Assembly: GCF_963506605.1 (NCBI RefSeq)
Contig: NC_083281.1
Span: 24,862,001 to 24,926,000, forward strand
From: Zootoca vivipara
Taxonomy: Eukaryota
DNA length: 64,000 bases
Reading direction: 5' to 3'
The notes beneath the pieces were generated by a model. The model was not told the origin of the DNA. It ran no database searches and was given only the letters and a program-made list of their open reading frames with translations. Each line of letters begins with the position of its first letter. Position 1 is the first letter of the stretch. The translations under genes and the position numbers were made by a program. This document shows positions 7,049 to 63,240 of this stretch, one piece after another.

Positions 7049-7781
7049 CCCACAACCCACAGCCCACAGCCCTCAGCCCACCTCCCTTGCCCCCCCACTG
7101 GCGATCCCAGATCTCTCCACTGGTGCACACAGCCTTCACTTCCAGGCTGCTCTTCGTCCGCGTACCCAACACACACCTCCAGAGAGAGAGAAACTTCATT
7201 CATTAGCCCCTCCTGCTCATTTCCCGGCTCTTCCCTCATCTTAGATGCCAGGATCAGAAGGAAAAGAGCTCCCATCCCATTCTCTCCCTCACTCCCTCCC
7301 TGAAGGGAAGATGGGGGGGGGGAGAAACGACCCAACTTCGGGGCAACTTTCCATCCGGATCCTGCTCTGGGCTTCACACACACCCTTATTTGTTTCGAAG
7401 GTTTTTGACCCCCTCACTTTCCTCATGCAACTCCCCCCCCCGCCGCCGCCGCCCTTTCCTCTTTCAGCAACACCAACACGAAATCCCAGGTGATTTTCAG
7501 ACAGGAGTGTGAGGAAAAATATCTCACCCCACCCCCCCCAAAAAAAAAAACTTCGGAGGGGGGGGAAGAGAAAATGGGAAAAAATAATAAAGCTTTGCTG
7601 AGGCGTCAAGAGGCGAGGAATTTGTGTCTGGTCCTCCCACAGGTTGGGGAGAAGGACGGGGAGGCTTTCCCCAATCTGAGAAGAGAAACCATTTCGTTGG
7701 AAAGCTGATAATGTGCAGCTTGGGGGAAGTGGGTGGGGAATTTAGGCACATAAGGCATATATGGTTATTAATTACTTAAAT

Positions 7782-10763: not shown

Positions 10764-11921
10764 ATGATGGAAGACTTTGAGGTAGCCATTTCTCAGGGCC
10801 AATTGGCAGATGCTGTGTCGCACGTGCTGGCAAAACCACTGCACTTTTTCAACAGCACTCCACTCAACGTTGCCGTAGTAGGAGAGCCCGGCTCCGGGAA
10901 GTCCTCCTTCATCAATGCCATGTTGGGTCTTCATGCTGATGACCCTCGTGCTGCTGAGACCGGCATACAGATGTCAACATTGCAAGTCAAGGATTACCCA
11001 AACCCGACACTTCCGCAAGTGATCCTTTGGGACCACCCCGGAAAGGGAACACCAACTTTTGGGAAGGACAAATTTGAGAAGAAGGTTGATTTAAATCACT
11101 TTGATTTCTTCGTCATCGTCGGCTCCCAACGCTTCCGCTCCACCCATTCTGACCTGGTCCATGAGATCCAAGATATGGCCAAGAATTTCTACTTTGTGCG
11201 CACCAAAGCAGACCTGGACCTGTCGGCCGCCAAGAGGCAACAGCCATCCAGCTACAATGAAGAGAAGGTCCTCTTGCACATCCAGGAGGACTGCAAAGAG
11301 TGCTTGGTAAGAGAAGGAGTGAGGGACCCACAAGTCTTCATCGTCTCCAACTGGGAAGCCGACCGCTTTGATTTCCCCCTCCTGCAGGAAACGCTGAAGA
11401 ACGATCTCTTGCGGCTGAAGAGGCAAGCCTTTCTGCACCGCTTCCCTAGCATCTGTCTGCCTATCTTAGAGAAAAAGAAAGCCTCTGTGAAGGAGAAGAT
11501 TTGGACCAGCAGGCTTTGTTTGCTGGTCGCTATTGGAAGCCCAGTTCCTTTCCTTCTTCCCATATTTCTGTTTAATAAGTTCCACTCCTGGTGCTTCCTA
11601 GACTTTGGCCTGAACGATCGATCCCTTGCAGCTCTGGCCCAGCGTGTTGGAAAGACAAGCACAGCCCTTAAAGCAGCAATGCAGTCCCTGGGAATGTTCT
11701 CTGCCATTTTATGGGTGCTGCCGGACTTGGTGGGACTCTCAGTGATGGCTTATGAATATCACCGCTGGGAGCATTTCCCCATCTTTGGCTGCCTTCTGTC
11801 CGGAGGGATTTCACTTCTTCGCACCTACTTCATGCTGCAGAAATGCATATCGGGTGCTGCGGATGACACCCAGAGGGTTCTGTCCAAAGCTCTTGAGGCA
11901 GAAGGGAAAAAGTCCATTTAG
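10764..11921 (+). CDS. Divergent immunity-related GTPase (IRG/IIGP family, GKS type), 385 aa, copy A
   Basis: Single long ORF with G1 GEPGSGKSS, G3-like WDHPG, DFFVIVGSQRF, G4 FVRTKAD and G5-like VSNW. A polypyrimidine tract and AG acceptor (ends 10747) lie just before the ATG, as in the single-coding-exon IRG architecture. AATAAA at 12526. Confidence 0.92.
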   Translation: MMEDFEVAISQGQLADAVSHVLAKPLHFFNSTPLNVAVVGEPGSGKSSFINAMLGLHADDPRAAETGIQMSTLQVKDYPNPTLPQVILWDHPGKGTPTFGKDKFEKKVDLNHFDFFVIVGSQRFRSTHSDLVHEIQDMAKNFYFVRTKADLDLSAAKRQQPSSYNEEKVLLHIQEDCKECLVREGVRDPQVFIVSNWEADRFDFPLLQETLKNDLLRLKRQAFLHRFPSICLPILEKKKASVKEKIWTSRLCLLVAIGSPVPFLLPIFLFNKFHSWCFLDFGLNDRSLAALAQRVGKTSTALKAAMQSLGMFSAILWVLPDLVGLSVMAYEYHRWEHFPIFGCLLSGGISLLRTYFMLQKCISGAADDTQRVLSKALEAEGKKSI

Positions 11922-14826: not shown

Positions 14827-17800
14827 TTATATTCTCTGCAGCCAAAGATGGAGAAGCTCTATACGGTCAGCAAACACAAGACCTGGAGCTGACTGTAACT
14901 CAGATCATCAGCTTCTTATAGCAAAATTCCAGTTTAAACTGAAGAAAGTAGGAAAAAACACTGGGCCAGTAAGATACAATCTAAATCAAATCCCTTATGA
15001 ATACACAGTGTAAGTGAGGAACAGGTTTAAGGATTTAGATTTGGTGGACAGAATGCCTGAAGAACTATGGATGGAGGCTCGTAACATTATACAGGAGGCA
15101 GCAACGAAAACCATCCCAAGGAAAAAGAAATGCAAGAAAGCAAAATGGCTGTCCAACGAGGCCTTACAAATAGCGGAGGAGAGGAGGCAAGCAAAATGCA
15201 AGGGAAATAGGGAAAGATACAGATTTCCAAAAAATAGCAAGGATAGACAAGAGGGTCTTCTTAAATGAGCAATGCAAAGAAATAGAGGAAAACGATAGAA
15301 TGGGGAAAACCAGAGATCTGTTCAAGAAAATTGGAGATATGAAAGGAAGATTTCGTACAAAGATTACCATAATAAAGGACAAAAGTGGTAAGGACCTAAC
15401 AGAAGCAGAAGACATAAAGAAGAGGTGGCAAGAATACACAGAGGAATTATACCAGAAAGATATGGAGGTCTCGTACACCCCAGGTAGTGTGGTTGTTGAC
15501 CTTGAGCCAGACATCTTGGAGAGTGAAGTCAAATGGGCCTTAGAAAGCACTGCTAATAACAAGGCCAGTGGAAGTGATGATATTCCAGCTGAACTATTTA
15601 AAATTTTAAAAGACGATGCTGTTAAGGTGCTACACCCAATATGTCAGCAAGTTTGGAAAACTCAGCAATGGCCAGAGGATTGGAGAAGATCAGTCTACAT
15701 CCCAATCCCAAAGAAGGGCAGTGCCAAAGAATGCTCCAGCTACCGCACAATTGCGCTGATTTCACACGCTAGCAAGGTTATGCTTAAAATTCTACAAGGC
15801 AGGCTTAGGCAGTAAGTGGACCGAGAACTCCCAGAAGTGCAAGCTGGATTTCGAAAGGGCAGAGGAACCAGAGACCAAATAGCAAACATGCGCTGGATTA
15901 TGGAGAAAGCTAGAGAGTTCCAGAAAAACGTCTACTTCTGCTTCATTGACTATGCAAAAGCCTTTGACTATGTCGACCACAGCAAACTATGGCAAGTTCT
16001 TAAAGAAATGGGAGTGCCTGATCACCTCATCTGTCTCCTGAGAAATCTCTATGTGGGACAAGAAGCTACAGTTAGAACTGGATATGGAACAACTGATTGG
16101 TTCAAAATTGGGAAAGGAGTACGACAAGGTTGTATATTGTCTCCCTGCTTATTTAACTTATATGCAGAATTCATCATGCGAAAGGCTGGACTAGATGAAT
16201 CCCAAGCCGGAATTAAGATTGCCGGAAGAAATATCAACAACCTCAGATATGCAGATGACACAATCTTGATGGCAGAAAGCGAGGAGGAATTAAAGAACCT
16301 TTTAATGAGGGTGAAAGCGGAGAGCGCAAAATATGGTCTGAAGCTCAACATCAAAAAAACCAAGATCATGGCCACTGGTCCCATCACCTCCTGGCAAATA
16401 GAAGGGGAAGAAATGGAGGCAGTGAGAGATTTTACTTTCTTGGGCTCCTTGATCACTGCAGATGGTGACAGCAGTCACGGAATTAAAAGACGCCTGCTTC
16501 TTGGGAGAAAAGCAATGACAAACCTAGACAGCATCTTAAAAAGCAGAGACATCACCTTGCCGACAAAGGTCCGTATAGTTAAAGCTATGGTTTTCCCAGT
16601 AGTGATGTATGGAAGTGAGAGCTGGACCATAAAGAAGGCTGATCGCCGAAGAATTGATGCTTTTGAATTATGGTGCTGGAGGAGACTCTTGAGAGTCCCA
16701 TGGACTGCTAGAAGATCAAACCTATCCATTCTTAAGGAAATCAGCCCTGAGTGCTCACTGGAAGGACTGATCTTGAAGCTAAGGCTCCAATACTTTGGCC
16801 ACCTCATGAGAAGAGAAGAATCCTTGGAAAAGACCCCGATGTTGGGAAAGATTGAGGGCACAAGGAGAAGGGGACGACAGAGGACAAGATGGTTGGACAG
16901 TGTTCTCGAAGCTACGAACATGAGTTTGACCAAACTGCGGGAGGCAGTGGAAGACAGGAGTGCCTGGCATGCTATGGTCCATGGGGTCACGAAGAGTCGG
17001 ACACGACTAAACGACTAAACAACAACAACACACGCTAGCAAGGTTATGCTTAAAATTCTACAAGGCAGGCTTAGGCAGTATGTGGACCGAGAACTCCCAG
17101 AAGTGCAAGCTGGATTTCGAAGGGGCAGAGGAACCAGAGACCAAATAGCAAACATGCGCTGGATTATGGAGAAAGCTAGAGAGTTCCAGAAAAACGTCTA
17201 CTTCTGCTTCATTGACTATGCAAAAGCCTTTGACTGTGTCGACCACAGCAAACTATGGCAAGTTCTTAAAGAAATGGGAGTGCCTGATCACCTCATCTGT
17301 CTCCTGAGAAATCTCTATGTGGGACAAGAAGCTACAGTTAGAACTGGATATGGAACAACTGATTGGTTCAAAATTGGGAAAGGAGTACGACAAGGTTGTA
17401 TATTGTCTCCCTGCTTATTTAACTTATATGCAGAATTCATCATGCGAAAGGCTGGACTAGATGAATCCCAAGCCGGAATTAAGAATGCCGGAAAAAATAT
17501 CAACAACCTCAGATATGCAGATGACACAACCTTGATGGCAGAAAGTGAGGAGGAATTAAAGAACCTTTTAATGAGGGTGAAAGAGGAGAGCGCAAAATAT
17601 GGTCTGAAGCTCAACATCAAAAAAACCAAGATCATGGCCACTGGTCCCATCACCTCCTGGCAAATAGAAGGGGAAGAAATGGAGGCAGTGAGAGATTTTA
17701 CATTCTTCGGCTCCTTGATCACTGCAGATGGTGACAGCAGTCACAAAATTAAAAGGTGCCTGCTTCTTGGGAGAAAAGCAATGACAAAGCTAGACAGCAT

Positions 17801-19560
17801 CTTAAAAAGCAGAGACATCACCTTGCCTACAAAGGTCCGTATAGTTAAAGCTATGGTTTTCCCAGTAGTGATGTATGGAAGTGAGAGCTGGACCATAAAG
17901 AAGGCTGATCGCCGAAGAATTGATGCTTTTGAATTATGGTGCTGGAGGAGACTCTTGAGAGTCCCATGGACTGCAAGAAGATCAAACCTATCCATTCTTA
18001 AGGAAATCAGCCCTGAGTGCTCACTGGAAGGACTGATCTTGAAGCTAAGGCTCCAATACTTTGGCCACCTCATGAGAAGAGAAGAATCCTTGGAAAAGAC
18101 CCCGATGTTGGGAAAGATTGAGGGCACAAGGAGAAGGGGACGACAGAGGACAAGATGGTTGGACAGTGTTCTCGAAGCTACGAACATGAGTTTGACCAAA
18201 CTGCGGGAGGCAGTGGAAGACAGGAGTGCCTGGCATGCTATGGTCCATGGGGTCACGAAGAGTCGGACACGACTAAACGACTAAACAACAACAACACACG
18301 CTAGCAAGGTTATGCTTAAAATTCTACAAGGCAGGCTTAGGCAGTATGTGGACCGAGAACTCCCAGAAGTGCAAGCTGGATTTCGAAGGGGCAGAGGAAC
18401 CAGAGACCAAATAGCAAACATGCGCTGGATTATGGAGAAAGCTAGAGAGTTCCAGAAAAACGTCTACTTCTGCTTCATTGACTATGCAAAAGCCTTTGAC
18501 TGTGTCGACCACAGCAAACTATGGCAAGTTCTTAAAGAAATGGGAGTGCCTGATCACCTCATCTGTCTCCTGAGAAATCTCTATGTGGGACAAGAAGCTA
18601 CAGTTAGAACTGGATATGGAACAACTGATTGGTTCAAAATTGGGAAAGGAGTACGACAAGGTTGTATATTGTCTCCCTGCTTATTTAACTTATATGCAGA
18701 ATTCATCATGCGAAAGGCTGGACTAGATGAATCCCAAGCCGGAATTAAGAATGCCGGAAAAAATATCAACAACCTCAGATATGCAGATGACACAACCTTG
18801 ATGGCAGAAAGTGAGGAGGAATTAAAGAACCTTTTAATGAGGGTGAAAGAGGAGAGCGCAAAATATGGTCTGAAGCTCAACATCAAAAAAACCAAGATCA
18901 TGGCCACTGGTCCCATCACCTCCTGGCAAATAGAAGGGGAAGAAATGGAGGCAGTGAGAGATTTTACATTCTTCGGCTCCTTGATCACTGCAGATGGTGA
19001 CAGCAGTCACAAAATTAAAAGGTGCCTGCTTCTTGGGAGAAAAGCAATGACAAAGCTAGACAGCATCTTAAAAAGCAGAGACATCACCTTGCCTACAAAG
19101 GTCCGTATAGTTAAAGCTATAGTTTTCCCAGTAGTGTTGTATGGAAGTGAGAGTTGGACCATAAAGAAGGCTGATCGCCGAAGAATTGATGCTTTTGAAT
19201 TATGGTGCTGGAGGAGACTCTTGAGAGTCCCATGGACTGCAAGAAAATCAAACCTATCCATTCTTAAGGAAATCAGCCCTGAGTGCTCCCTGGAAGGACA
19301 GATCGTGAAGCTGAGGCTCCAATACTTTGGCCACCTCATGAGAAGAGAAGAATCCTTGGGAAAGACCCTGATGTTGGGAAAGATTGAGGGCACTAGGAGA
19401 AGGGGACGACAGAGGATGAGATGGTTGGACAGTGTTCTCGAAGTTACGAACATGAGTTTGACCAAACTGCGGGAGGCAGTGCAAGACAGGAGTGCCTGGC
19501 GTGCTATGGTCCATGGGGTCACGAAGAGTCGGACACGACTAAACAACTAAACAACAACAA
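14827..19560 (+). mobile_element. 5'-truncated BovB (RTE clade) LINE with its last ~1266 bp in three tandem units
   Basis: RT motifs (FIDYAKAFD, QGCILSP, YADD) in ORFs 15816-17018, 17046-18284 and 18312-19550; endonuclease tail at the 5' end; (CAA)n tails. 10-bp TSD AGCATTTCAT at 14817-14826 and 19561-19570; empty site in copy B near 42297. Confidence 0.95.
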
Positions 19561-39404: not shown

Positions 39405-40562
39405 ATGGTTGAAGACTTTGAGGTAGCCGTTTCTCAGGGCCAATTGGCAGATGCTGTGTCGCACGTGCTGGCAAAACCACTGCACTTTTTCAACAGCACT
39501 CCACTCAACGTTGCCGTAGTAGGAGAGCCCGGCTCCGGGAAGTCCTCCTTCATCAATGCCATGTTGGGTCTTCATGCTGATGACCCGCGTGCCGCTGCAA
39601 CCGGCATACAGATGACAACATTGCAAGTCAAGGATTACCCACACCCGACACTTCCACAAGTGATCCTTTGGGACCACCCCGGAAAGGGAACGCCAACTTT
39701 TGGGAAGGACAAATTTGAGAAGAAGGTTGATTTAAATCACTTTGATTTCTTCGTTATCGTCGGCTCCCAGCGCTTCCGTGCCACCCATTCTGACCTGGTC
39801 CATGAGATCCAAGATATGGCCAAGAATTTCTACTTTGTGCGCACCAAAGCAGACCTGGACCTGTCGGCCGCCAAGAGGCAACAGCCATCCAACTACAATG
39901 AAGAGAAGGTCCTCTTGCACATCCAGGAGGACTGCAAAGAGTGCTTAGTAAGAGAAGGAGTGAGGGACCCACAAGTCTTCATCGTCTCCAACTGGGAAGC
40001 CGACCGCTTTGATTTCCCCCTCCTGCAGGAAACGCTGAAGAACGATCTCTTGCGGCTGAAGAGGCAAGCCTTTCTGCACCGCTTCCCTAGCATCTGTCTG
40101 CCTATCTTAGAGAAAAAGAAAGCCTCTGTGAAGGAAAAGATTTGGACCAGCAGGCTTTGTTTGCTGGTCGCTCTTGGAAGCCCAGTTCCTTTCCTTCTTC
40201 CCATATTTCTGTTTAGTAAGTTCCGCTCCTGGTGCTTCCTAGACTTTGGCCTGAACGATCGATCCCTTGCAGCTCTGGCCCAGCGTGTTGGAAAGACAAG
40301 CACAGCCCTTAAAGCAGCAATGCAGTCCCTGGGAATATTCTCTGCCATTTTATGGGTGCTGCCAGACTTGGTGGGACTCTCAGTGATGGCTTATGAATAT
40401 CACCGCTGGGAGCATTTCCCCATCTTTGGCTGCCTTCTGTCCGGAGGGATTTCACTTCTTCGCACCTACTTCATGCTGCAGAAATGCATATCGGGTGCTG
40501 CGGATGACACCCAGAGGGTTCTGTCCAAAGCTCTTGAGGCAGAAGGGAAAAAGTCCATTTAG
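39405..40562 (+). CDS. Divergent IRG GTPase, 385 aa, copy B (paralog of 10764-11921)
   Basis: Same length and motifs; about 11 aa differences from copy A by manual comparison; same acceptor context. Confidence 0.92.
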   Translation: MVEDFEVAVSQGQLADAVSHVLAKPLHFFNSTPLNVAVVGEPGSGKSSFINAMLGLHADDPRAAATGIQMTTLQVKDYPHPTLPQVILWDHPGKGTPTFGKDKFEKKVDLNHFDFFVIVGSQRFRATHSDLVHEIQDMAKNFYFVRTKADLDLSAAKRQQPSNYNEEKVLLHIQEDCKECLVREGVRDPQVFIVSNWEADRFDFPLLQETLKNDLLRLKRQAFLHRFPSICLPILEKKKASVKEKIWTSRLCLLVALGSPVPFLLPIFLFSKFRSWCFLDFGLNDRSLAALAQRVGKTSTALKAAMQSLGIFSAILWVLPDLVGLSVMAYEYHRWEHFPIFGCLLSGGISLLRTYFMLQKCISGAADDTQRVLSKALEAEGKKSI

Positions 40563-46123: not shown

Positions 46124-47356
46124 CTAGTGCTCTGGTTCTAGGGCTTTCTTTCGAACCCTTTCAGCATCCTCAGCTAGATTATTGATGAAGCTCAACAGCA
46201 TCCAATAAGTGCTGGTAAAAGACACCCCTGCTGCTACCAAGCTTCTAACTAGTTAATGCGGGATTAATGTTCTTGCAGAATCGGTTATTTTCTTTATAAT
46301 GAGATCCCTGGTAATTTCTTCCATCCGAGGAGACTTCATCACGGCCTTCAATTTCTCAACAGGCTTCCTGGCCAATTTGGCCCGCCTAGCCAGGGAGTCA
46401 TCATCCAGCTCAAATCTCTTGCAGAAGGCAACCATGGACCCAAGCAAGAGGGCAACATCACAAGCCACAGGAAGGGCTGGAATGGGAATAGCATTGATGC
46501 CAGCAGACGCCAGGGATATTTTCCATATGTGGCTCTTCAGCACAGATTTCTTCTTTTCCGTGACTTCAGGGGAAAACATGGGAAGGCTGAGCGGGAATGC
46601 ATGTCTCTTTAGGCTGGGCAGATCTTTCTCCAACGTCTCCACCAGTCGGGGGAAGTCATACTTGGCAAGGTCCCAGGAGGAGATCAGAAAGACTTGAGGG
46701 ATGGTGCTCCTGAAGCACTTCTTAAGCTGCTTCTTTAAGTCATTCCTCATCTTCTCAAGGACTTCCTCTTCATTGAAGGTATTTGGGTAAGTCCTTTCCA
46801 TGTTGTCTAGATCTGCATCTACTTTGGAGCGCACAAAATAACACTTCTTCTCCATCTCCTGGATTGCCTGAGCTAGGTCAGTGTGGTTGGATCGGAATTT
46901 CTCTGAGCCAACAATGATAAAGAAGTCATAGCTGGGGAAATCCACCATCTTAAGGTAACTCTCTGGGGAGAAATCTGGGGATCCAATTCCTGGCAGGTTC
47001 CAGAATTTCACTTTGGGGTCGTTAGAATGCGTATAAACCTTTGGATTCAGTGTAGTTTCTGTCACTCCTACAGGGGCAGCACCATCATCTTCTGCCTTCT
47101 TGCCTCGGAGAGCATTGATGAGGGATGATTTCCCAGAGCCCGTCTCTCCAGTGATGGCAATGTCAAGCTCAGTGTTTTCCATCTCCTCCATCTCCTCTTT
47201 CACCTCAGAAGTTGCTTCCTTCATTCCACCATCACTGAAAACCTCCATAAACCTCTCATATATCTTGATTGCTATATCTACGTTCATGTCTGTATTTTTC
47301 AATATAGTCTGGATAATCTCAGTCAACAATGAAAGTTTTTCTGCAAATGAATTTAT
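46124..47356 (-). pseudogene. Disabled or truncated IRG paralog of 22195-23445 (copy B)
   Basis: Start ATG has become ATA (47354-47356), G3 Asp has become Asn (WNLPG), and an in-frame TAA sits at 46253-46255. The ancestral frame continues after it (LVRSLVAAGVSFTSTYWML...KALEPEH*) to 46124. Confidence 0.82.
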
Positions 47357-48398
47357 CCTAGAAGAAAAAGGGAGAGCTCAGACAGGCTTTGTCAATACTA
47401 TTGGCCCTTCTAGCTGGGAAACTCAGTGATGATTTACACTCAGCTCAAATATAAATATTTTCTACTCAGCAAAAAATGTTTGAATTTTTATATTGTGGGT
47501 ATTTCAACAAGGAATTCCTTTTGTGCTCAGTGTTGCTCTTAAATTTACATTCTTCTCAGTGTCCACACAACTGCATCATTATCAAAATGCCATTTTATAT
47601 TTCACCCCCCTTTTAATCCAGACTTTCAATTTCCTTGTTTTTTCTGTTTTTGTTTTTACATATTGAGTTTTGTGTAGAAACTGTAAATTCAGATTAAATG
47701 CCAAGAAAACATTGGAATTTTGATGAGGACATTGTCATGTAGACACTCAAAAACTTCCATGTATAAGTAGAAAGAAGTCCTCTGTAAACTGTGGTGTGGA
47801 AGCTTCCTCCCAGAAGTGGCTCACTCAGTGGGGCTGAGACACAATGCTAGTTTACAGGCACACCTGCTGCTGCTTACCGAGAGGGAGAGGGCAAGGCAGC
47901 AGAGAGGATAGTGTTGCATTCCTGCTCTGGTAGGAGCACTGCATTTGATCGGCTGGTGTGTCTGCACCATGCTGAACTCCCCACCCCTTTGCATCACCTG
48001 GTAAGACACAGGGACACACCGATTGGTAAATGAACAGTGTGGCTACACCCCACAGAATGAAGCACTTCTGCTCTGTTCTGATTTTTCTTAAAAACAAATA
48101 TTTGCTTTGATCCAATCCACTGTGCTCACTTGCGCCCACACTTGAAAGGGTTGCCATAAGGCATATCAGAGCCCAGGATTTCACAAAATACACATATATG
48201 CATACACTTTCATACCTTGCAACTACCATTACACCTAGAGTTCTGCAGCAGTGGCTCAACTGCCAGGACCCCTGGGAAATGCCATTCCCCAGACTCCTAA
48301 TTCTTGTATTTGTCAGGGACCCTGATGCTCAACCCATTGCTGCTGTTGCATTTTTGACATCATGGGAAGCCTACTGCGGACTCTCCCTATTGCCTATA

Positions 48399-50328: not shown

Positions 50329-52371
50329 CCTTAGGGGAAAGCTTCAGAGCAGCAGGAGATCAAACATCATTGGGATCACAAGCCTGCCAACCAAGCAAAG
50401 GGAAAGCAGGCTGGGAGGGAAAGACTTTGAAGGAACTCTGTTAGACTTACTTGCTCCTCAATATCCTTGATAAACAGTTGTTTGATGATAGGGTAGTTTA
50501 TCTTCTCACTTCAGCTGCGCACACTCTCTCCTGTCCTCTCCGGACTTTGTGGCAGAGGACTTAGTTCATAGTTTTACCTAAAAACAAAGCAATTGTCCCA
50601 TGGTAACCACAATGAAAAACCTGTGAATGGGCAGACCTCAGAAGGCTGTTGAACCAACTTTGTCTTTCTGTCAGGCCGAGATGTATCCCGTAATAGGAAA
50701 TGTAGGATAGATCCACACCACACATTTATAGCACATTCAAAACACGTTTAAAGCACATGACTTCCTCCCAAAGGATATTGGGAATGCTAGTTCCTCAAAC
50801 ATAATTTTTTTTAGCACCCTTAAACTACAGGATTCCTTGGGGAAAGCCATGTGCTTTAAATGTATGGGGAATGTGCTTTAAACAGGCAAGTGTAAGAGTG
50901 TGGACAGGGGTGAAAAGCAAAGGTCAAGAGAACTTTTAACAAAGAGTTTCATTTGTTTCTGCAGTGCCTCAAAGCCATCCTTGGCCACAAAGAGTGAGCA
51001 AATCTCTCCTGATTATGGCACATGTCATATGTCTATGTGTACATTATCTCTTTCCTTATGGAAGCTTGGGGAGGGGGCTGACCCTTAGCACATCTGGAGC
51101 TGAGGGAGTACATCATGCAGTTACTTAGGGATTGCTTTTTCTTATGTGGGTGAGTAATAAAGAAACCTTTTGTGAAGTTCCCAGAGTCTCGTAGATGTTG
51201 CCTGGCAAACAGAGCCAAGAGGTGGATTGAAAGCTGAGCAGGTAAGGTCACATCCCCTAAAATCCTCCTGCTACACCACAAAGGAAACTTCTGATTGCCC
51301 CAAGCCAAATGCCAATGGGTTTCTCAGGTAAGAAAACGCCCCCCAACAAATCAGCGTTGCATACCTGCAGGCAGGGACCTGCTTTTTAAAACTTATTCTG
51401 CAATGACACATGATATTAGGTAATTTATAGATGATATATGGTGACGATAAAGGCTCAGGAACCATGCCAGGACCGAGAGGAAATCTTTTGCAACCCAAAG
51501 AGGCGTTTCCACTTAATGTCTTTTGAAAGTTTTATTGCAAGCTAAATATAAGCATTCTAATTTTAGCACCCACCTAGCAACATTTGCAGTGTGGGATCAC
51601 AGGCAAAAATATGCTGTTGCCCATATTTGCTCTTCATAAGGCACACTAGCCAAGCACAACCACTGTGGGGAAATGAAAAATACCTGTTGCTGCTGCCCCT
51701 TCTTACCTCTTTTTCAGAACATCTCTGGAGCGCAAAGGCTGGTCAGCAGTGGAGGTTGAGACAGGTTGCAAATGTCTCCATGGTGTTCTGCAAGGGTATT
51801 CAAGTGCAGGCAAGGGAGAGATAACCTAATCAGTTACGGGAAAATGTTAGGTAACTCAAAGTGAAACAGCAGTTTCTTCAGACCGCCTGTGAAGAAGGCT
51901 TATCTTTCTGTTCAGGCTTTCCCTGGCCCATAAGATTGGACCCTATATATTACAGTACATGTTTGAAACTTTCGAATTTCTGTTTCACTTTCTTTAAGGT
52001 GTTTAGGTTGGCTTTAGGTTGAGTTTTTGTTTAACATTTTCATGTGTTGTTGCTGTTGGCATCCGCCTGTCTCGGGAGGCAATGGAAGAGTGTGCCTTCG
52101 GGGGTGAAGTCAAACTGTTGGAGAGACATGCTTTGTTGCAGCTGAGGCAGGTGAAGGCGTCTGGCTATTGCTGATGCAGGCATACCATGGCGTTTCTCTT
52201 TCTGCAATCCTCCCAGCGGTCGTTCCTCCTCTGGTCACTGCTGTGGATACACAACTTGATTGTCTCAAGGCACTGCAGTCACCTGCAAGGGCAGGGTTAA
52301 TGTTGCCAGCCTTCATATCACGTTTGCATACATGCAGAGTTGTTTTAATGACATATATTAATTAACCTTTT

Positions 52372-52773: not shown

Positions 52774-52842
<69 letters not shown>
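52774..52842. repeat. (AC)n(AG)n microsatellite
   Basis: Directly visible. Confidence 0.95.
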
Positions 52843-52843
<1 letters not shown>

Positions 52844-53538
52844 AATGTGACATACGAACTTTTGCTTACTTTGCATGCATGCATTTTGCACTCCAGCTGA
52901 CTTTCTTCTAAGGTTTTGTGTGGTGCTTTTTTAACCTCACATCTCCCTCCCTCCCCCATCTCTCCATCCTCCCCCCCCCCATCTCTCACAGACATCCTGA
53001 GCCCCCTGAGCGATCTGCAATTGCTTCCAGCAACTTGTTCAACTAGAACTTGATTCATGCCCTGGAACTATGTATGCGATTTGGCTAAGCAGTGAGAGGC
53101 CTTCCCCAAAGCCATGCTGATGCCAGTGTACTGCCAGCTTCAAGGAGCGATCAGTTGCATATGCCTAATTAATTCCACAGAACTCAATGACACCTAGAAC
53201 TCATCCATCAATCATCCAGAGTGAGTGTAGGAATTCCTTTCAGCAAACGTATCATGCTTTGATGGACAACAAATGCCTTCTCTCTCATTTATTGAGAAAT
53301 ATGAGCCTGCTCCTTTTCAGCAAGGACAAAACTATTCTAATTTGACGAGATTTGACCAGCCAAGACTCTTGTCTGACTCTGTTTTAGACCTATGGCAGGA
53401 AACCTACGTAACTGATGCAGTGGCTACTTTTTTATTCTTAATATGTGATTGTACTGTACTGGAATTTCTTGTGTTTAATTGATATTAACTGATATGTTCT
53501 AATGGTTATTTTATAATGAATTTGAAATGGCATGTCTA

Positions 53539-54866: not shown

Positions 54867-55784
54867 TCACTCTAGTTGCAGAGGCTTCCTCGCATGTGTT
54901 TGCACGTGGTCCTTGTTCCCATGAAAGAACCGCACGATGCTGGTCCAAGAACCTGAGATCCTGATCCGGTAGTGAATGAGGCCTCCCCGCACGTCGTAGA
55001 TATTGATCTTATTCTCCCCTTCGCCAGAGGCGAAGTTCAGCACCTGCCCACCGCAGTCTACAACCATGTAGGCATTGTCCTGGACACAGAACGGCTCCTT
55101 GGCAAACTCTTCCACGGCAAACTCCAAGCAGTGCCCTAGTTCCTCGGAAAGTACCCCCCAGGAGCGCAAGCTCTGCCTCACTCTCAGCAGGTCTCCGACG
55201 CTCAGTGGCTCCTTGTGATTGGCCAGCCTCGCAAGGTACATTTCGGCCGTCCGCTCCTTGATATCACACTGGATCCGCTTCTTTATGACATATACAGAAA
55301 TCTGGCAGTCCCCCTTGCCGGACCGAAACTCTATGGGGGGTCCATCACACTGGATGACCAGCTGGGCATTTTGCTGCACAGACCAGGGCTCCTGGAGAAA
55401 GGTATCAATGGCCTTGGTGAAACAGGCTTGGAGTATGTAGTTGACGCCATCCAGCCGATCGCGGTGCCTTAGGAGATTCTCAACTGTCAGTGGTTCGTAA
55501 GAGGGCAGTAGGTTAGCCACGTACAACAGGGCATCCTTCATGATACTGAGAACACTGGTGGGCTTCCACAATTGCTTGGTTGTCACGGCAACCTCGTGGT
55601 CCGTGCCCATGGGGGAATAATCCGCTTTGTTCACAGCTAGCCACATCGTGGAGAGGAGAACAGCGAGCGCCACCACGACCGCGACGGTCAGCAGTTTGTT
55701 CATGAATCTCCAGAGCTGAGCTGTAAACCACGGGATGACGATGCTGAGAGACCATTGCAAGACAGTGCTGAGGACAGAGGCCAT
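54867..55784 (-). CDS. Uncharacterised 305-aa protein: N-terminal hydrophobic/TM segments plus two ~95-aa internal repeats
   Basis: Long uninterrupted ORF with GC-rich third positions, a strong Kozak (AAACATGG), and a splice acceptor TCCTTCTTTTTTAAG 5 nt upstream. Clear internal duplication (aa ~97-176 vs ~192-275). Confidence 0.8.
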   Translation of the reverse strand: MASVLSTVLQWSLSIVIPWFTAQLWRFMNKLLTVAVVVALAVLLSTMWLAVNKADYSPMGTDHEVAVTTKQLWKPTSVLSIMKDALLYVANLLPSYEPLTVENLLRHRDRLDGVNYILQACFTKAIDTFLQEPWSVQQNAQLVIQCDGPPIEFRSGKGDCQISVYVIKKRIQCDIKERTAEMYLARLANHKEPLSVGDLLRVRQSLRSWGVLSEELGHCLEFAVEEFAKEPFCVQDNAYMVVDCGGQVLNFASGEGENKINIYDVRGGLIHYRIRISGSWTSIVRFFHGNKDHVQTHARKPLQLE

Positions 55785-55980
55785 GTTTCCTTAAAAAAGA
55801 AGGACATATCATCAGCGCTTGGAGGTGGAATTCATTGATGGTTTTTGTTTCCACAATTTAGGTTAAAGGTTCAGTATCTGGAGAACCACAGGTTCCCCAC
55901 CTCTGGTGCCTAGGACTGCAGCCTTTGTCAACTGATCACCTGGGTGAATCCATTAAGCCATCCATCGATATACAGTAGAG

Positions 55981-56116
55981 CAGGCATCCCCAAACTGCGG
56001 CCCTCCAGATGTTTTGGCCTACAACTCCCATGATCCCTAGCTAACAGGACCAGTGGTCAGGGATGATGGGAATTGTAGTCCAAAACATCTGGAGGGCCGA
56101 AGTTTGGGGATGCCTG
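55981..56116. mobile_element. Palindromic hAT MITE inserted into the TIR of a TcMar MITE (~55973-56323)
   Basis: Perfect TSD CAGTAGAG (55973-55980, 56117-56124). Confidence 0.85.
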
Positions 56117-57479
56117 CAGTAGAGCCTTGGTTCTCGAACGGCTTAGTTGACGAACAAATTGGCTCCCGAACACCGAAAACCCGGAAGTAAGTGTTCCAGT
56201 TTTCGAACACCAAATGTCCAAAGCTCCTGCAGCCAATCGGAACCCACGCCTTGGTTTTCGAACGGTTTCAGGAGTCGAACGGACTTCCGGAACGGATTAA
56301 GTTTGAGAACCAAGGTTCCACTGTGCTAGAAAGGTGCCTTCACAATTAATTGATCAGCAAATCCAAAACAATAGTTTTTAAATTTAAAAATACAGCTGGT
56401 GCCACCCATCATCTTAAAAGAGGCTTTCCCACCTGTGTTTGTGTGAGAGAAAATAAAGAGCATATCGATGTAACGTATGCATGCTTGCATCATCTATTCT
56501 AACTGAAAACTTTGCTGTGCAACTCAACAGATTTTGCAATGGTCCTAAAAAAGGGAGGCATGCAGGCATTGTACAGTATGTCACATTGTATTATGTGTGA
56601 CATTCCTGATCCTTTCTTACAAAAGACAGTGAGGGTGGGATTGCAGCCTCATGTTGTGCACACGCTCACCCGCTAGTGCCACAAAAATTTAGTTTTTCTC
56701 ATTCATGTTCATCTCTAAAATGCTTTCAGTCCAGATTCATTCTAGATCCTGCCATGCACAACAGTGGGCGTGGCTACTTAATTCTTATAGGAAACCCTCC
56801 CTCAGATCAGATAAAACAAGCACTTATTCATGCAGAACCTAGTTAAGCTATGTAACTCCCTCCCACAGGAAGGAAGCGATGCTCACCAACTTAGATGGCT
56901 TTAAAAGCGGATCAGGCAAATTAATTGAGGAGAAGGCTAGCTAGACTGCGGCAGAATGTGAAGGTTACAGGGAACCAGGCAGAGGGCCTTCTCGGTAGTG
57001 GCACCCGCCCTGTGGAACACCCTCCCATCAGATGTCAAGGACTATCTGACTTTTAGAAGACATCTGAAGGTAGCCCTGTTTAGGGAAGTTTTTAATGTCT
57101 AATGCTTTGTTATTTTTTATGTGCTGTAAGCCTCCCAGAGTGGCTGGGGAAACCCAGCCAGATGAGCGAGGTATAAATAAATTAAAAATTGTTATTACAA
57201 TAAGCCAAACTGTTTCCCAGAAGAGAACTGCTCCTGTTGCAGCTTCCGGTTTCTATTTTGCACATGTCCTATCAATAAATCCTCCTCTGGTTCTTGCCAA
57301 ACGAACCACTGCGTCCTTAACGTTATAAACCAGACGATTGCAACCCGGATGAGCAGCAGAGTCACCTGCATTTCTGTGTGGACTGTGATCCTAGAACAAT
57401 AACATCTGGGGAAGAAATAAAAATCTCCTACCGGTACTAAAAATTGCACCTGCCTCCTCTCAGTGACTGAAGTACTTAC

Positions 57480-58750
57480 ATATCGCACGCCGCCGTTTCT
57501 CCGTCCTCCTCTCCTTCAATGAGAACAATCCTACTTTGTTAACTTTTCAGTTTCGGGTTCCTGCAATGCATGTGACTCCACATTGGCGCACGGTGCTGCC
57601 TCTAACGGCGCGCAACGAACAGGTCCTAAAGCCGGTTTCCCCTTACTCGGTTCAGGGGAAATAAAGAAATAAAGCGTTTCAGTGATCTCGCCGATTGTCG
57701 CGATCGTGCCATTTCTCTCCCTTGAAAAATAAAAAATAAATATTTAAAAGCATTTTACCTGCTTAGATTACTGCCTTTATAAATAAATTTATCCGCGCGC
57801 GCCCCCGGCCGCACACTTCGCACGCCTTTTTGTATATACACCACACAGCAAATTTTAATTTTAACCCCCACCCCCACCCTCGCTTAAAAATAATAATAGC
57901 GATTCTGTTGCGGTCCGAACTCATTCCTTCCACCAGGAGGCAGCAAGGAACAATCAGCAGCTTGGAAACCGAAAGTAGATCGTACATGTACAATCAGGGC
58001 GCTTCTGGAGCCGGCGCGCGGGCAAAACAAAACGGCCCCTCGGGAAACCCCCTCAGTGCCCCCCCCCCGACTCCAAACGATCTGCTCCACATTCTCTCCT
58101 AGGTCACTCTGCTGAACGTCTGGATCTCCACGGATTTGCCTTGAAAGGTATGTGGGGTGGATGGGGGCTGGAGAGGAGCTGGGGGCGGCTGGCCAAAGTT
58201 TAGCCAGAGCTGAGTTCAGATCGCGAGCAATTCAGATTACAGGGAAAGGGAGATTTCCCCCAAAGCGGCTGGCTCCGCAAGATCAAGAGATCCCCTTCGC
58301 CCACCCCGCCTCCCGACCGGTGGATCGCTGCGAATCTGCCACTGAGGTCGCGGGAGGACAATCAGAGTCCCGCCTGCAAAAGGACGGGATACAGCGGGAG
58401 GAGTTGGAAGGAAAATGTGGGCCGGCGGCGCACACACTTGACTCGGAAAGCCAGCCTCCCATCCATCTGGATCCCGGGGAAAGCGAAGACCCGGCTCTGG
58501 CACGTTCGTGGACTTTTCAAAGCCTTTTTGTTTCTGCTTTTTCGGAGCGGGGCGAGGGGCGAATGTCGTTTCAGTAGGTGGCCCTTGGCTTAAAATGTTT
58601 GGAAACTGTTGCTGCCTTGGCTTAAAATATTTGGAAACTGTTGCTGCGTTGGAGGTACTTAAGAAGCAGGAAGTGGCTCAGGATACGACGCTGAAAAACA
58701 AGAGCGCAGGACAACAGACGCATTGCTATTAGTCATAGGGAATCTCCAGC
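57480..58750. promoter_or_regulatory. CpG island and candidate bidirectional interferon/NF-kB-responsive promoter
   Basis: Locally high CpG. ISRE GAAACCGAAAGT at 57965-57976; ISRE-like GAAACTGAAAAGT (minus) at 57542-57554; kB-consensus GGGAAACCCC at 58042-58051 and GGGAATCTCC at 58738-58747; minus-strand GTAAGT donor at 57479. Confidence 0.65.
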
Positions 58751-60179: not shown

Positions 60180-61256
60180 TTTCTCTTGAGTACTTGTTCA
60201 TCTCCAGAGCTCCTTGCGTGAATTAGGCCCCTTAAGTTGGTTCTGAAAACATTTAGCAGGGAAGTAGCAAAAGGAAGTGGTTAGGCTGTGTGGGAATAAA
60301 GCTGAGAGGCTGGGCTGTGAGCAGGTGCCTGCATTTTGAGGATGTGCATTTAAAGCAAAGGAGAAGAGGAGGAGGAACTGAGATGCTTTGAAGAGAGGTA
60401 GTGGCCATTTCTGATGCAATGGTGCAAGGATGAAAAGGAGCTTGCCAGGACCAAGTTGGATAGGGTGAATTGTTGGTTCGCTGTCAGCCAAATACCGTGG
60501 CACTTTTCAGGTGGAGAAAGTCAGGCCTGAAGTAGGGAGAGAGAGAACTCCCCTTGACTAAGACTATAAAGGTGCAAACTAACTGATGCTTTGTTGAGCA
60601 AACACCTGCTGGCCTGGGCCCTAGTCCAAGATGGCTGCCAAGAGACGACGTGAAACAGAGGTTGGCAAGAGCAGCCCCAAAAGGTGTGTTTTCCTTCAAT
60701 GAACTTTCACTACTAGCACACTGGGGTTACAAGATCAAGGAACAGACAAAGAGCGTTTTAGCCACGTTCTTTGAGTATAAACAGTATTTTGTTATTCATA
60801 CCTCGCTGTCTTTCTCTGGGGGAACTTTTTCATTTTTAATCATTGCGTTTTCCTATGGAAACTTAAAGTTCTGCTCATTCTTTATTAATAAGAATAATAA
60901 GAATAATTTGATTTCTCACCTGACCCTTTGCAATAAAGGCCCCGGGGTGGATTGCAACAATTTAAAACACAATGCTAGAAACGGTTTAAAACACCCGGAG
61001 GTGTTGCTTCAGGATGCAAACACTGTTGAACGGGAATGATACAATGAAGGTGTTAGGCGCACACTTGTAGGGAGGGGATTCCACAATTTAGGGGCTACCA
61101 TTTGGGGCCTAAGTCATTTTAGGGCGTTAATCACTAGTGCAAGTGTTTAAATTGGCTACACACCAACAGTTTATGTGATGCGTCTCTTTCACCCTGGGAA
61201 AAATGAAAGTCAAGATTCTAAAGTCAGTTTGAGGGCCAGTGGCCACATTCCTTATA

Positions 61257-61499
61257 CAGTGGTACCTCTACTTACAAATAACTCTACTTACGAATTTTTC
61301 TACTTACAAATGGAGCTCCGTCCGCCATCTTGGATGCGGTTTAGATAGGATTTTTTCTACTTATGAATTTTTAGATAGGGTTGCTTCGACTTTCGAATTT
61401 TTTCTCCCAATGCATTCCTATGGTATTCGACTTACAATTTTTTTCGACTTACAAATGTGTGTTCGGAACGCATTAAATTCGTAAGTAGAGGTACCACTG
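61257..61499. mobile_element. Tc1/mariner (Tigger-like) MITE
   Basis: TA-CAGTGGTACCTCTACTTAC ... GTAAGTAGAGGTACCACTG-TA. Confidence 0.85.
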
Positions 61500-62001
61500 T
61501 ACTCAAGCAAGAGGCATTATCAGAGTTCAATGGCAAAACCCAGAAAAAACATGGAGGTGTAGGGCAGCTGAGGGGTGTGGCCTGAGGAGAGTTCTGAGGG
61601 CCATATAGAGAGGCCCAAGGACCTTTGGTTCCCCACCTGTGGACTAAACAAAAGGGAAGCAGGCTATTGGTTCTTGCTTCAGAGGTCGGAGCCAGGCAGC
61701 TCTAATTTCCCCTATCCTGATAACCTCTCACATAACAAATTTTGGATGGAATAAGGCCCTATTTATAACATAAACATTATTCAAGACAACGTTGGCCCCT
61801 TTTCTCTTTCTCCAAATATCCAGCCCAGAGTTGAGCTGGCTGCATGGCTCTCTAAATGAAAGAAAGGTGCCCTGTCTCATGCTATCTCCTCAGATGATGT
61901 CTCAGATGTGGAACACATTGTCCCACAATAAGTGAAGCCTGTTCAATGTCTCCTTATGTGTTACATTCTCTCCCTTTCCTGCCAGGCCTCGACACGATCC
62001 T

Positions 62002-63240
62002 ATGGCAGTTCAGCCGCCGCCGGATTCTCAAAAGCAAGCCTCTGCATATGCAGAAGAATATGATATCATCACCGAAGAAGACATCGAAGAGATTAGGGAC
62101 GCACTTGAAGGAGGAAGAATGGCAGAAGCAGCATCCAAAATATTGGAAAACCTGCAGGCTTTGGAGAATGCCCAGCTGGACATTGCAGTAACGGGAGAGT
62201 CTGGCGCCGGCAAGTCCTCGTTTGTCAATGCCATTCGAGGCCTAGGGGATGAAGACGAAGGATCTGCCGACACTGGGGTTGTAGAGACCACGATGGTGCC
62301 CACTCCTTATCCACACCCCAAGCACCCCAACGTGACTGTGTGGGATCTGCCCGGAATCGGCACTCCAGATTTCCAGTCCAGCACTTACCTGGAGCAGGTC
62401 AACTTCTCCCGCTATGACTTCTTTATTCTCATTGCCTCAGAACGCTTCAAGTCCAACCATGCCCAGTTGGCGAAGGAAATCCAGCGGCTGGGCAAATGCT
62501 TCTATTTTGTGCGCTCAAAGGTAGACTCAGATCTAGAGGCCACCAAAAAGCGCCGGCCAAAAGCCTACGACGAGGAGGCGATACTGAGGAAGATTCGAGA
62601 GAATTGCAAAGCGTGCCTTCAGGCCGAAGGAGTGGCTGCTCCCCAGGTCTTCCTCCTTTCCAGCTGGGAACTAAACAAGTATGACTTTATACAGCTTGAG
62701 GAGACGCTGGAGAAGGAGCTGCCGAGCCACAAGAGACATGCATTCCTCATGGCCCTGCCAAACATCTCTTTGGCCATCTTGCAGAAGAAGAAAGAGGTCT
62801 TGCAGAAGCAAATCTGGAAGCTGGCTACCGTCTCATGTGGAATAGCAGCTGTGCCCATCCCAGGCCTCTCTGTAGCTTGCGATACAGCTATTCTGGTTAA
62901 GTCTCTTTCGGAATACCGTCAGAACTTTGGCCTAGACGAAGAATCCCTCGGCAAATTAGCTGAGAAAGTTGGCAAGACTGTGGAGGAGCTTAAAGAGGTG
63001 ATCAAGTCACCACTGGCCAAAGAAATCTCCAGGGACCTCGTGGTGAAGATGCTAACCAAAGCCGGTGGAGGAGCGTTGATGCTGGTGGAGTACTTTGCCA
63101 GCACAATCCCTGTATTTGGCTCCGTGACAGCTGGAGGGATATCCTTTGGAACCACCTATTACATGCTTTACAGCTTCCTAAATGAGGTGGCAGGTGATGC
63201 TCATAGTGTCCTCATCAAGGCCTTTGAGTCTGATGTTTGA
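62002..63240 (+). CDS. IRGC: Canonical IRG GTPase, IRGC/interferon-inducible GTPase 5-like, 412 aa
   Basis: G1 GESGAGKSS, TGVVETT, WDLPGIG, RSKVD, LSSW, and C-terminal AAVPIPGLSVACD and AGGISFGTTY motifs. Acceptor TTTCCTGCCAG before the ATG; AATAAA at 63701. Orthology to IRGC is inferred, not tested. Confidence 0.88.
   Translation: MAVQPPPDSQKQASAYAEEYDIITEEDIEEIRDALEGGRMAEAASKILENLQALENAQLDIAVTGESGAGKSSFVNAIRGLGDEDEGSADTGVVETTMVPTPYPHPKHPNVTVWDLPGIGTPDFQSSTYLEQVNFSRYDFFILIASERFKSNHAQLAKEIQRLGKCFYFVRSKVDSDLEATKKRRPKAYDEEAILRKIRENCKACLQAEGVAAPQVFLLSSWELNKYDFIQLEETLEKELPSHKRHAFLMALPNISLAILQKKKEVLQKQIWKLATVSCGIAAVPIPGLSVACDTAILVKSLSEYRQNFGLDEESLGKLAEKVGKTVEELKEVIKSPLAKEISRDLVVKMLTKAGGGALMLVEYFASTIPVFGSVTAGGISFGTTYYMLYSFLNEVAGDAHSVLIKAFESDV

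Follow-up and report, generated by a model that had tools for sequence, protein, structure and literature searches.

What is a protein without recognisable relatives outside its own family doing in the middle of a cluster of IRG GTPase genes? The question is raised by a gene for 305 amino acids (aa) in the lizard Zootoca vivipara, found in a stretch of 64,000 nucleotides (NCBI RefSeq assembly GCF_963506605.1, contig NC_083281.1, positions 24,862,001 to 24,926,000 of the forward strand), which is called the window throughout and from whose first letter all positions are counted. An initial annotation, made from the letters of the window, suggested from position and promoter that the product is an undescribed interferon-stimulated factor of cell-autonomous immunity and possibly a partner of the IRG proteins. 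The explanation favoured here, on balance and with some reservation, is that the gene encodes a type II membrane protein whose two novel repeats, stabilised by cysteines and held on a stalk, face the lumen or the cell surface and serve there for binding.

The minus strand from 54867 to 55784 carries an uninterrupted 305-codon open reading frame (ORF) in the ORF list, i.e. 305 aa plus stop in one exon. Its ATG at 55784-55782 (minus strand) stands in a strong Kozak context, with A at -3 and G at +4, an in-frame TAA lies three codons 5' of it, and a polypyrimidine tract with AG is read from the sequence just upstream (ttcttttttaag followed by gaaacATGG). The intact single-exon frame with acceptor and strong Kozak context reported at the outset is therefore present, on the minus strand, which had been left unstated. 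The encoded protein is 100% identical to the catalogued protein P0001, and its cluster holds 7 near-identical sequences. Its body consists of two copies of a repeat of ~95 aa, located by a repeat hidden Markov model (HMM) at the positions given in Table 1. The shared motif described previously is reproduced, and the two copies are 38% identical over 80 aa (BLASTP, E 3e-17), a similarity that is far above chance. Two hydrophobic stretches had also been proposed ahead of the repeats. The one at aa 31-51 is strongly hydrophobic and fits a transmembrane (TM) helix. The other, at aa ~1-27, was rejected as a second TM segment and is better described as an amphipathic helix, with a mean Kyte-Doolittle (KD) value of 1.02 and a helical moment of 0.73 in what is the least conserved part of the protein (24% identity among orthologs).

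The gene is widely shared among reptiles. A word-index search returned 15 proteins, one identical to the window protein and the others reptilian wherever the source is named. The orthologs, from 12 or more reptiles, are 46-69% identical to the window protein, the full-length ones having 300-317 aa; those with a name are all labelled "uncharacterized" or "hypothetical", and Pfam recognises no domain in any of them. NCBI entries of the "uncharacterized protein LOC..." kind, e.g. Rhineura floridana LOC133370825, Elgaria LOC134408152, Anolis carolinensis LOC103282400 and Gopherus evgoodei LOC115643925, share with the window protein this length, the N-terminal TM helix, the two repeats and six invariant Cys, and are the same gene in other species. 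A literature search by the LOC identifiers of six orthologs found no paper naming them, and a general one on IRG in reptiles found nothing relevant. The novelty lies in the protein family, and possibly in its fold, not in a demonstrated mechanism; the ortholog sequences are already public as "uncharacterized". The ortholog alignment has 59 invariant columns, nearly all of them within the repeats, and identity to the window protein rises from 24% in the N-terminus through 45% in the TM helix and 46% in the stalk to 65-68% in the repeats and C-terminal tail. Six Cys are invariant in these orthologs (group 1 below), and the window protein matches the 13 other group-1 sequences in its TM anchor with a positive N-terminal flank and in its Cys pattern, C-CC in the first repeat and CCC- in the second.

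A maximum-likelihood tree was computed on those family members that have exactly two adjacent repeats, all others being left out. The window protein falls among the squamates in a clade of 15 rows with support of 100/99, in which each named species has one copy and branches are short, with the squamates grouped together and the tortoise Gopherus as their sister. Because of these features the 305-aa gene appears to have existed as a single copy, constrained by purifying selection, from a time before squamates and turtles diverged; within the 64-kb window, likewise, no second copy was found. The expectation of a real folded alpha+beta domain under purifying selection is thereby upheld, by the clade, by the six invariant Cys and by the confident structure prediction described below. 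The frame is also intact and of the same length in orthologs across the squamates and in the tortoise.

This conservation bears directly on the reading that there is no functional host gene here, the ORF being a chance frame, a pseudogene or derived from a transposon or virus. Reverse-transcriptase ORFs do occur elsewhere in the window and give that reading some local colour, but the intact same-length orthologs, with conservation centred on the domain, effectively refute it. It is further opposed by the single copy in the window, by the absence of any transposon or viral Pfam domain, by the lack of a fold match in BFVD or of any relative in 2.9 million viral contigs, and by the confidence of the predicted structure (pLDDT 91.5, the predicted local distance difference test score). 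The initial annotation had seen no transposon motifs, and the same results agree with it; a non-genic origin is scarcely credible.

The ~95-aa repeat appears, from sequence comparison, to be the unit of a small undescribed domain family that is found mainly in non-avian reptiles. A Pfam search with the window protein gave no match even at E<=10, and searches with 20 relatives gave sub-threshold noise only and no other domain above threshold. Sequence searches of the PDB, with the single protein and with a 35-sequence profile, gave no match, and neither did the ESM Atlas, with the whole protein or with the repeats alone. When 1.84 billion representatives were searched exhaustively with an HMM, 66 proteins reached E<=1e-3, among them three WD40 proteins (P0071, P0076 and P0077) that are strand-repeat false positives. 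Organism names were read for 30 of the 66 matches, about half. Those read are turtles, squamates (snakes included) and Alligator, with no bird, mammal or amphibian among them, and the exceptions are one eel, Conger conger, and one hemichordate, Ptychodera flava, both marginal matches with two repeat matches each and ~94% hhalign probability to the profile. Together with the fold searches below, none of which gave a significant match, these results agree with the earlier statement that the repeat can be assigned to no known family.

Within the family, which comprises squamate, turtle and alligator proteins, a single protein has from 1 to 19 repeats, with 19 in Chrysemys, 13 in Pelodiscus and 10 in Platysternon, and paralogs share contigs in Alligator, Pelodiscus, Gopherus and Thamnophis. 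Two of the turtle proteins, P0016 (Chrysemys picta bellii LOC135974678; 1934 aa, 19 consecutive repeats) and P0017 (Pelodiscus sinensis LOC142825960; 1281 aa, 13 consecutive repeats), have no TM segment, no signal peptide and almost no N-x-S/T sequons; either turtles really have such soluble arrays of the repeat, or the annotation has fused genes that stand in tandem. P0018 (Platysternon megacephalum TFJ95814.1) carries the source name "molybdenum cofactor biosynthesis protein MoeA", which is probably a misannotation since it consists of ten 95-aa repeats and has no MoeA Pfam match.

The AlphaFold model of the full-length protein shows one long N-terminal helix, a disordered stretch from aa 52 to 77 and, C-terminal to it, a body that is predicted with confidence. 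When aa 72-305 were folded alone with 35 family sequences, the pLDDT was 91.5 and the predicted template modelling score (pTM) 0.78. In this domain model each repeat opens with a short strand (EPL), followed by two helices and a third of one turn (EPxxVQ), and then by four strands and a final helix, with an additional helix ahead of repeat 1 and a helix and a strand after repeat 2. Foldseek against the PDB found nothing for the full-length model and a best E of 0.04, which is not significant, for the domain model; against BFVD the best E was 0.03, also not significant; and a fold comparison in VIA gave no significant match. The order of secondary-structure elements had suggested TBP-like and roadblock/longin-like folds, and both were dropped as none was among the matches listed. 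The best-covering structural neighbour of the domain model is the C-terminal domain of REDD1/DDIT4 (PDB 3LQ9); membership in the REDD1/RTP801 family was rejected, there being neither a sequence match to the RTP801 C-terminal domain nor a significant fold match. From the model it is possible that the repeat represents a new fold, a reading against which it must be counted that a two-repeat query lowers the Z score of matches to small single-domain folds.

The side of the membrane on which the repeats lie bears on the proposed partnership with the IRG proteins. Almost without exception, the group-1 orthologs have a net positive charge, typically +1 to +3, in the 15 residues that precede the TM helix and a charge of 0 to -3 in the 15 that follow it; the N-terminus of the window protein is predicted to be cytosolic because of this positive N-terminal flank (the positive-inside rule). 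Two sets of paralogs point the same way. The squamate paralogs of group 2 (P0034, P0035, P0038, P0040, P0042, P0043, P0046 and P0048) have an N-terminal tail of 58-103 residues before the TM helix, and after it they contain 28 N-x-S/T sequons as against the 10.1 expected from composition, including an invariant NGT in the repeat (DGP in the window protein) and an NLT or NLS in 6 of the 8 (PLT in the window protein). The turtle paralogs of group 3 (P0021, P0030 and P0033) have the arrangement TM-repeats-TM, with positive outer flanks. The cysteines add to this. Scored on neighbouring pairs among 204 repeat instances, the occurrence of Cys d (GxCEI strand) goes together with that of Cys b (EPxC) of the next repeat, 86 pairs being concordant (59+27) and 34 discordant (20+14), and the two are jointly absent in group 2. 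Such co-occurrence fits a putative inter-repeat disulfide, which in the window protein may join C160 to C233. Because of the charge flanks, the group-2 sequons, the TM-repeats-TM paralogs and the Cys pattern, a type II protein (N-in, C-out) with exoplasmic repeats is judged reasonably probable.

Several observations weigh against this topology. Several members of the family have neither signal peptide nor TM segment, among them turtle proteins of 5-19 repeats whose start is conserved across species, and three representatives start with MGxC, which resembles a signal for N-myristoylation and palmitoylation; if the anchor-less gene models are right, the repeat domain also works in the cytosol. 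The best-conserved cysteine, at position a (90%), is often without a partner, for which reason disulfides cannot be taken as proven. The window protein itself has no N-glycosylation sequon, and 12 orthologs of group 1 (P0001-P0014) have 0 N-x-S/T sequons after the TM helix where 12.3 would be expected, a count made on sequences that are not independent of one another. The contrast between the groups could mean selection against glycosylation in group 1 and for it in group 2. A lipid-anchored cytosolic domain, prompted by the MG and MGxC starts, was considered and then demoted in view of the conserved sequons and the TM-repeats-TM paralogs, and it is kept here as counter-evidence.

As for the genomic setting, the gene does lie inside an IRG cluster, as had been claimed: five IIGP (PF05049) ORFs are found in the window, on both sides of the 305-aa gene, with the nearest at 46253-47329 (-) and 62002-63240 (+) and with Pfam scores of 257-394 bits for the neighbouring ones. 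The window protein itself contains no IRG-type G domain (Pfam, E<=10). The likeness to the IIGP GTPases, including membrane-bound regulators of the Irgm type, consists in the neighbourhood and in the predicted layout of a 5' exon followed by one long coding exon (PMC1297648). Unlike them, the window protein has neither a G domain nor any Pfam match, and its conserved part is probably across the membrane.

The neighbour that is transcribed divergently from the 305-aa gene is by sequence a slow-evolving IRGC-like type. It is 94% identical to the "interferon-inducible GTPase 5-like" protein of Podarcis raffonei; identity is 79-87% in the remaining squamates and 64-67% when amphibians, lungfish and coelacanth are compared, and the source names of these relatives are "interferon-inducible GTPase 5-like" or "IRG cinema". 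Linkage of the two genes is conserved in squamates, as judged in nine species from locus tags and matching scaffold lengths rather than from DNA. In Lerista edwardsae the IRGC-like gene (lerEdw1_011396) and the 305-aa ortholog (lerEdw1_011398) are two locus tags apart on one contig of 642,465 bp, and in Rhineura, Elgaria, Hemicordylus, Tiliqua, Paroedura, Eublepharis, Sphaerodactylus and Gekko kuhli both proteins come from scaffolds of identical length. Mammalian IRGC is testis-specific and not interferon-induced, and it is the only mammalian IRG without interferon response elements (PMC1297648, PMC9232189), so that a conserved IRGC-like neighbour alone is no argument for immune function.

A further element of the setting is the predicted promoter (Table 1). 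The probable start of transcription is a short exon, non-coding and ~1.7 kb 5' of the ATG, near hexamers of the type bound by IRF proteins that resemble an interferon-stimulated response element (ISRE). Joining the GTAAGT donor to the acceptor at 55790 places an in-frame TGA directly before the ATG, and the predicted exon 1 is therefore read as non-coding. In the whole window there are 17 ISRE-like sites at one mismatch as against 7.6 expected, and 15 exact GAAANNGAAA cores as against 5.05 expected, and in both cases 0 of 100 shuffles reach the count. The hexamers and the second core in Table 1 lie close to the predicted transcription start. Control of the 305-aa gene by IRF or interferon is plausible on these grounds, and the arrangement recalls the interferon-inducible IRG genes of the mouse, which have promoters with ISRE and GAS (gamma-activated sequence) elements, a non-coding 5' exon and one long coding exon (PMC1297648).

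Table 1. Features of the 305-aa gene, its predicted transcript and its divergent neighbour (positions in the window)
Feature	Position	Strand	Remarks
Amphipathic N-terminal helix, aa 1-30	55695..55784	-	predicted cytosolic; ends in basic R26 and K30; poorly conserved
Single TM helix (predicted signal anchor), aa 31-51	55632..55694	-	mean KD 2.57; continuous helix aa 2-54 in AlphaFold (AF2) model
Acidic disordered stalk, aa 52-77, then helix aa 75-92 into repeat 1	55506..55631	-	pLDDT <50 for aa 52-77; helix is residues 5-21 of domain-only model
Repeat 1, aa 94-186	55227..55505	-	HMM match; pLDDT >90; Cys positions a, c, d (C-CC)
Repeat 2, aa 189-283	54936..55220	-	HMM match; order of secondary structure as in repeat 1; Cys a, b, c (CCC-)
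C-terminal tail, aa 284-305	54870..54935	-	66% identity among orthologs; helix 208-217 and strand 222-226 of domain model; conserved K-x-LQLE end
Candidate polyadenylation signal, ATTAAA	54727..54732	-	~135 nt 3' of stop; predicted
Predicted 3' splice acceptor, polypyrimidine tract and AG	55790..55805	-	5 nt 5' of ATG; read from sequence
GTAAGT donor, candidate end of short non-coding exon 1	57474..57479	-	~1.7 kb 5' of ATG; predicted from sequence
Three tandem IRF-type hexamers (GAACCC GAAACT GAAAAG), ISRE-like	57543..57560	-	~65-85 nt 5' of GTAAGT donor
CCAAT box	57582-57586	-	read from sequence
Second exact GAAANNGAAA core	57965..57974	+	edge of GC-rich island (~57800-58600, GC 0.56-0.61)
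IRGC-like IIGP gene, divergent from 305-aa gene	60631..63240	+	main exon 62002-63240, 412 aa; PF05049 394 bits
Upstream coding exon of IRGC-like gene (MAAKRRR...)	~60631-60684	+	tblastn; matches N-terminal extension of Podarcis raffonei isoform X1

From position and promoter together a partnership with the IRG proteins could be constructed, in which the product would be induced by interferon and anchored in a membrane with its tandem domain in the cytosol. As an adaptor it would there bind the IRG GTPases encoded next to it, or regulate them, at endomembranes or pathogen vacuoles. Such an adaptor would account for a gene inside the IIGP cluster with IIGP linkage conserved in squamates, for the enrichment of IRF/ISRE cores in the window with two just 5' of the gene, and for a gene layout shared with the inducible mouse IRG genes, and a cytosolic lipid-anchored domain would suit those relatives that lack a signal peptide and TM segment or start with MGxC. 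However, the charge flanks, the group-2 sequons and the TM-repeats-TM paralogs place the repeats on the exoplasmic side, which would leave as sole cytosolic part aa 1-30, the segment that orthologs conserve least. The conserved neighbour, moreover, is of the IRGC-like type that is not interferon-induced in mammals, and the family went undetected by these searches in IRG-bearing mammals, fish and amphibians, save for the marginal eel match. Direct partnership, as raised in the initial annotation, is therefore unlikely, because of the predicted orientation of the domain and the nature of the conserved neighbour, and we regard the adaptor as a distinctly improbable explanation.

The same neighbour is the starting point for a non-immune explanation, namely a tissue-specific (e.g. 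testis or germ-line) membrane protein whose gene shares its locus, and possibly its regulation, with the IRGC-like gene and would owe its place among the IRG genes to gene order, not to an immune role. The head-to-head arrangement with a gene that evolves so slowly, the persistence of this pairing in the nine squamates and the testis-specific, non-inducible character of mammalian IRGC all suit it, as does an ortholog group that is single-copy and has short branches, since immune effectors typically evolve fast. Reproductive proteins, moreover, often have Cys-bearing ectodomains and are restricted to one lineage, and this too counts in its favour. It does less well with the two exact GAAANNGAAA cores at the predicted promoter and with the remaining neighbours, which are ordinary IIGP genes with similar motifs; and the tandem-cluster expansion of the family in turtles, alligator and snakes is a pattern of immune and reproductive families alike. 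The non-immune explanation is held to be unlikely, if still worth keeping in view.

Other features of the window may be noted beside these genes. Exact GAAANNGAAA cores are clustered at 51977-52202 (-), with a further one at 47624-47633 (-), upstream of the IIGP ORF 46253-47329, for which they form a candidate interferon-responsive promoter; between the 305-aa gene and this promoter region lies a compound (CT)n(GT)n microsatellite (~52790-52850). Two IIGP ORFs of 385 aa, at 10764-11921 (+) and 39405-40562 (+), agree nearly in Pfam span as well as in length, as if part of the cluster had recently undergone a segmental duplication, and matched ISRE-like sites are found at 7184/34908 and 20685/43321. 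The predicted intron of the 305-aa gene contains a 59-nt inverted repeat at 55980-56117, 93% complementary with a 20-nt loop, which is probably a hairpin element like a miniature inverted-repeat transposable element (MITE) or short interspersed element (SINE). Three ORFs that follow one another head to tail at 15816-19550 (+), with lengths of 400, 412 and 412 aa, an RVT_1 domain in each and a period of ~1266 bp, are a tandem array of a reverse-transcriptase fragment, not the normal layout of a retroelement.

The type II reading, to return to it, describes a functional single-copy gene, common to squamates and at least one turtle, whose product would be a single-pass membrane protein. From N- to C-terminus it would begin in the cytosol with an amphipathic helix, short and variable, continue through a single TM helix and an acidic stalk that is flexible, and end in a rigid pair of repeats and a conserved tail, with repeats and tail facing the lumen of the endoplasmic reticulum or endosome or the cell surface. 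The repeats would be stabilised by conserved cysteines, maybe including the C160-C233 bond, and the likeliest role would be that of an exoplasmic binding module held out on its stalk, i.e. a receptor, a ligand or a lumenal binder. BST2/tetherin is an interferon-induced type II membrane protein. By analogy, the window protein resembles it in the predicted N-in/C-out single pass and stalked ectodomain and in the ISRE-like elements at the predicted promoter; it differs in having no sequence or fold similarity to BST2, no coiled coil and no glycosylphosphatidylinositol signal.

A more far-reaching version can be formulated, in which the repeat would be a new fold founding a sauropsid-centred family and the protein an interferon- or IRF-induced type II protein that exposes its module inside endosomes or pathogen vacuoles, on the lumenal side of the membrane. 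The protein would then be a lumen-side arm of cell-autonomous immunity that is genetically coupled to the cytosolic IRG GTPases, and the turtle proteins of 5-19 repeats would be its expanded relatives. This is speculative, and little credence is given to it here.

If the family is as isolated as the searches suggest, it would be a vertebrate domain that has been conserved for more than 250 million years and has neither a name nor a structure. Its 95-aa repeat has been expanded to 19 tandem copies in turtles, and the modes of its membrane anchoring would number at least three. The fixed place of the 305-aa gene beside an IRGC-like GTPase in an IRG cluster brings together one locus, one predicted promoter with IRF-type sites and one expressible putative ectodomain, and the locus may thereby offer a handle on what the IRG loci of reptiles do.

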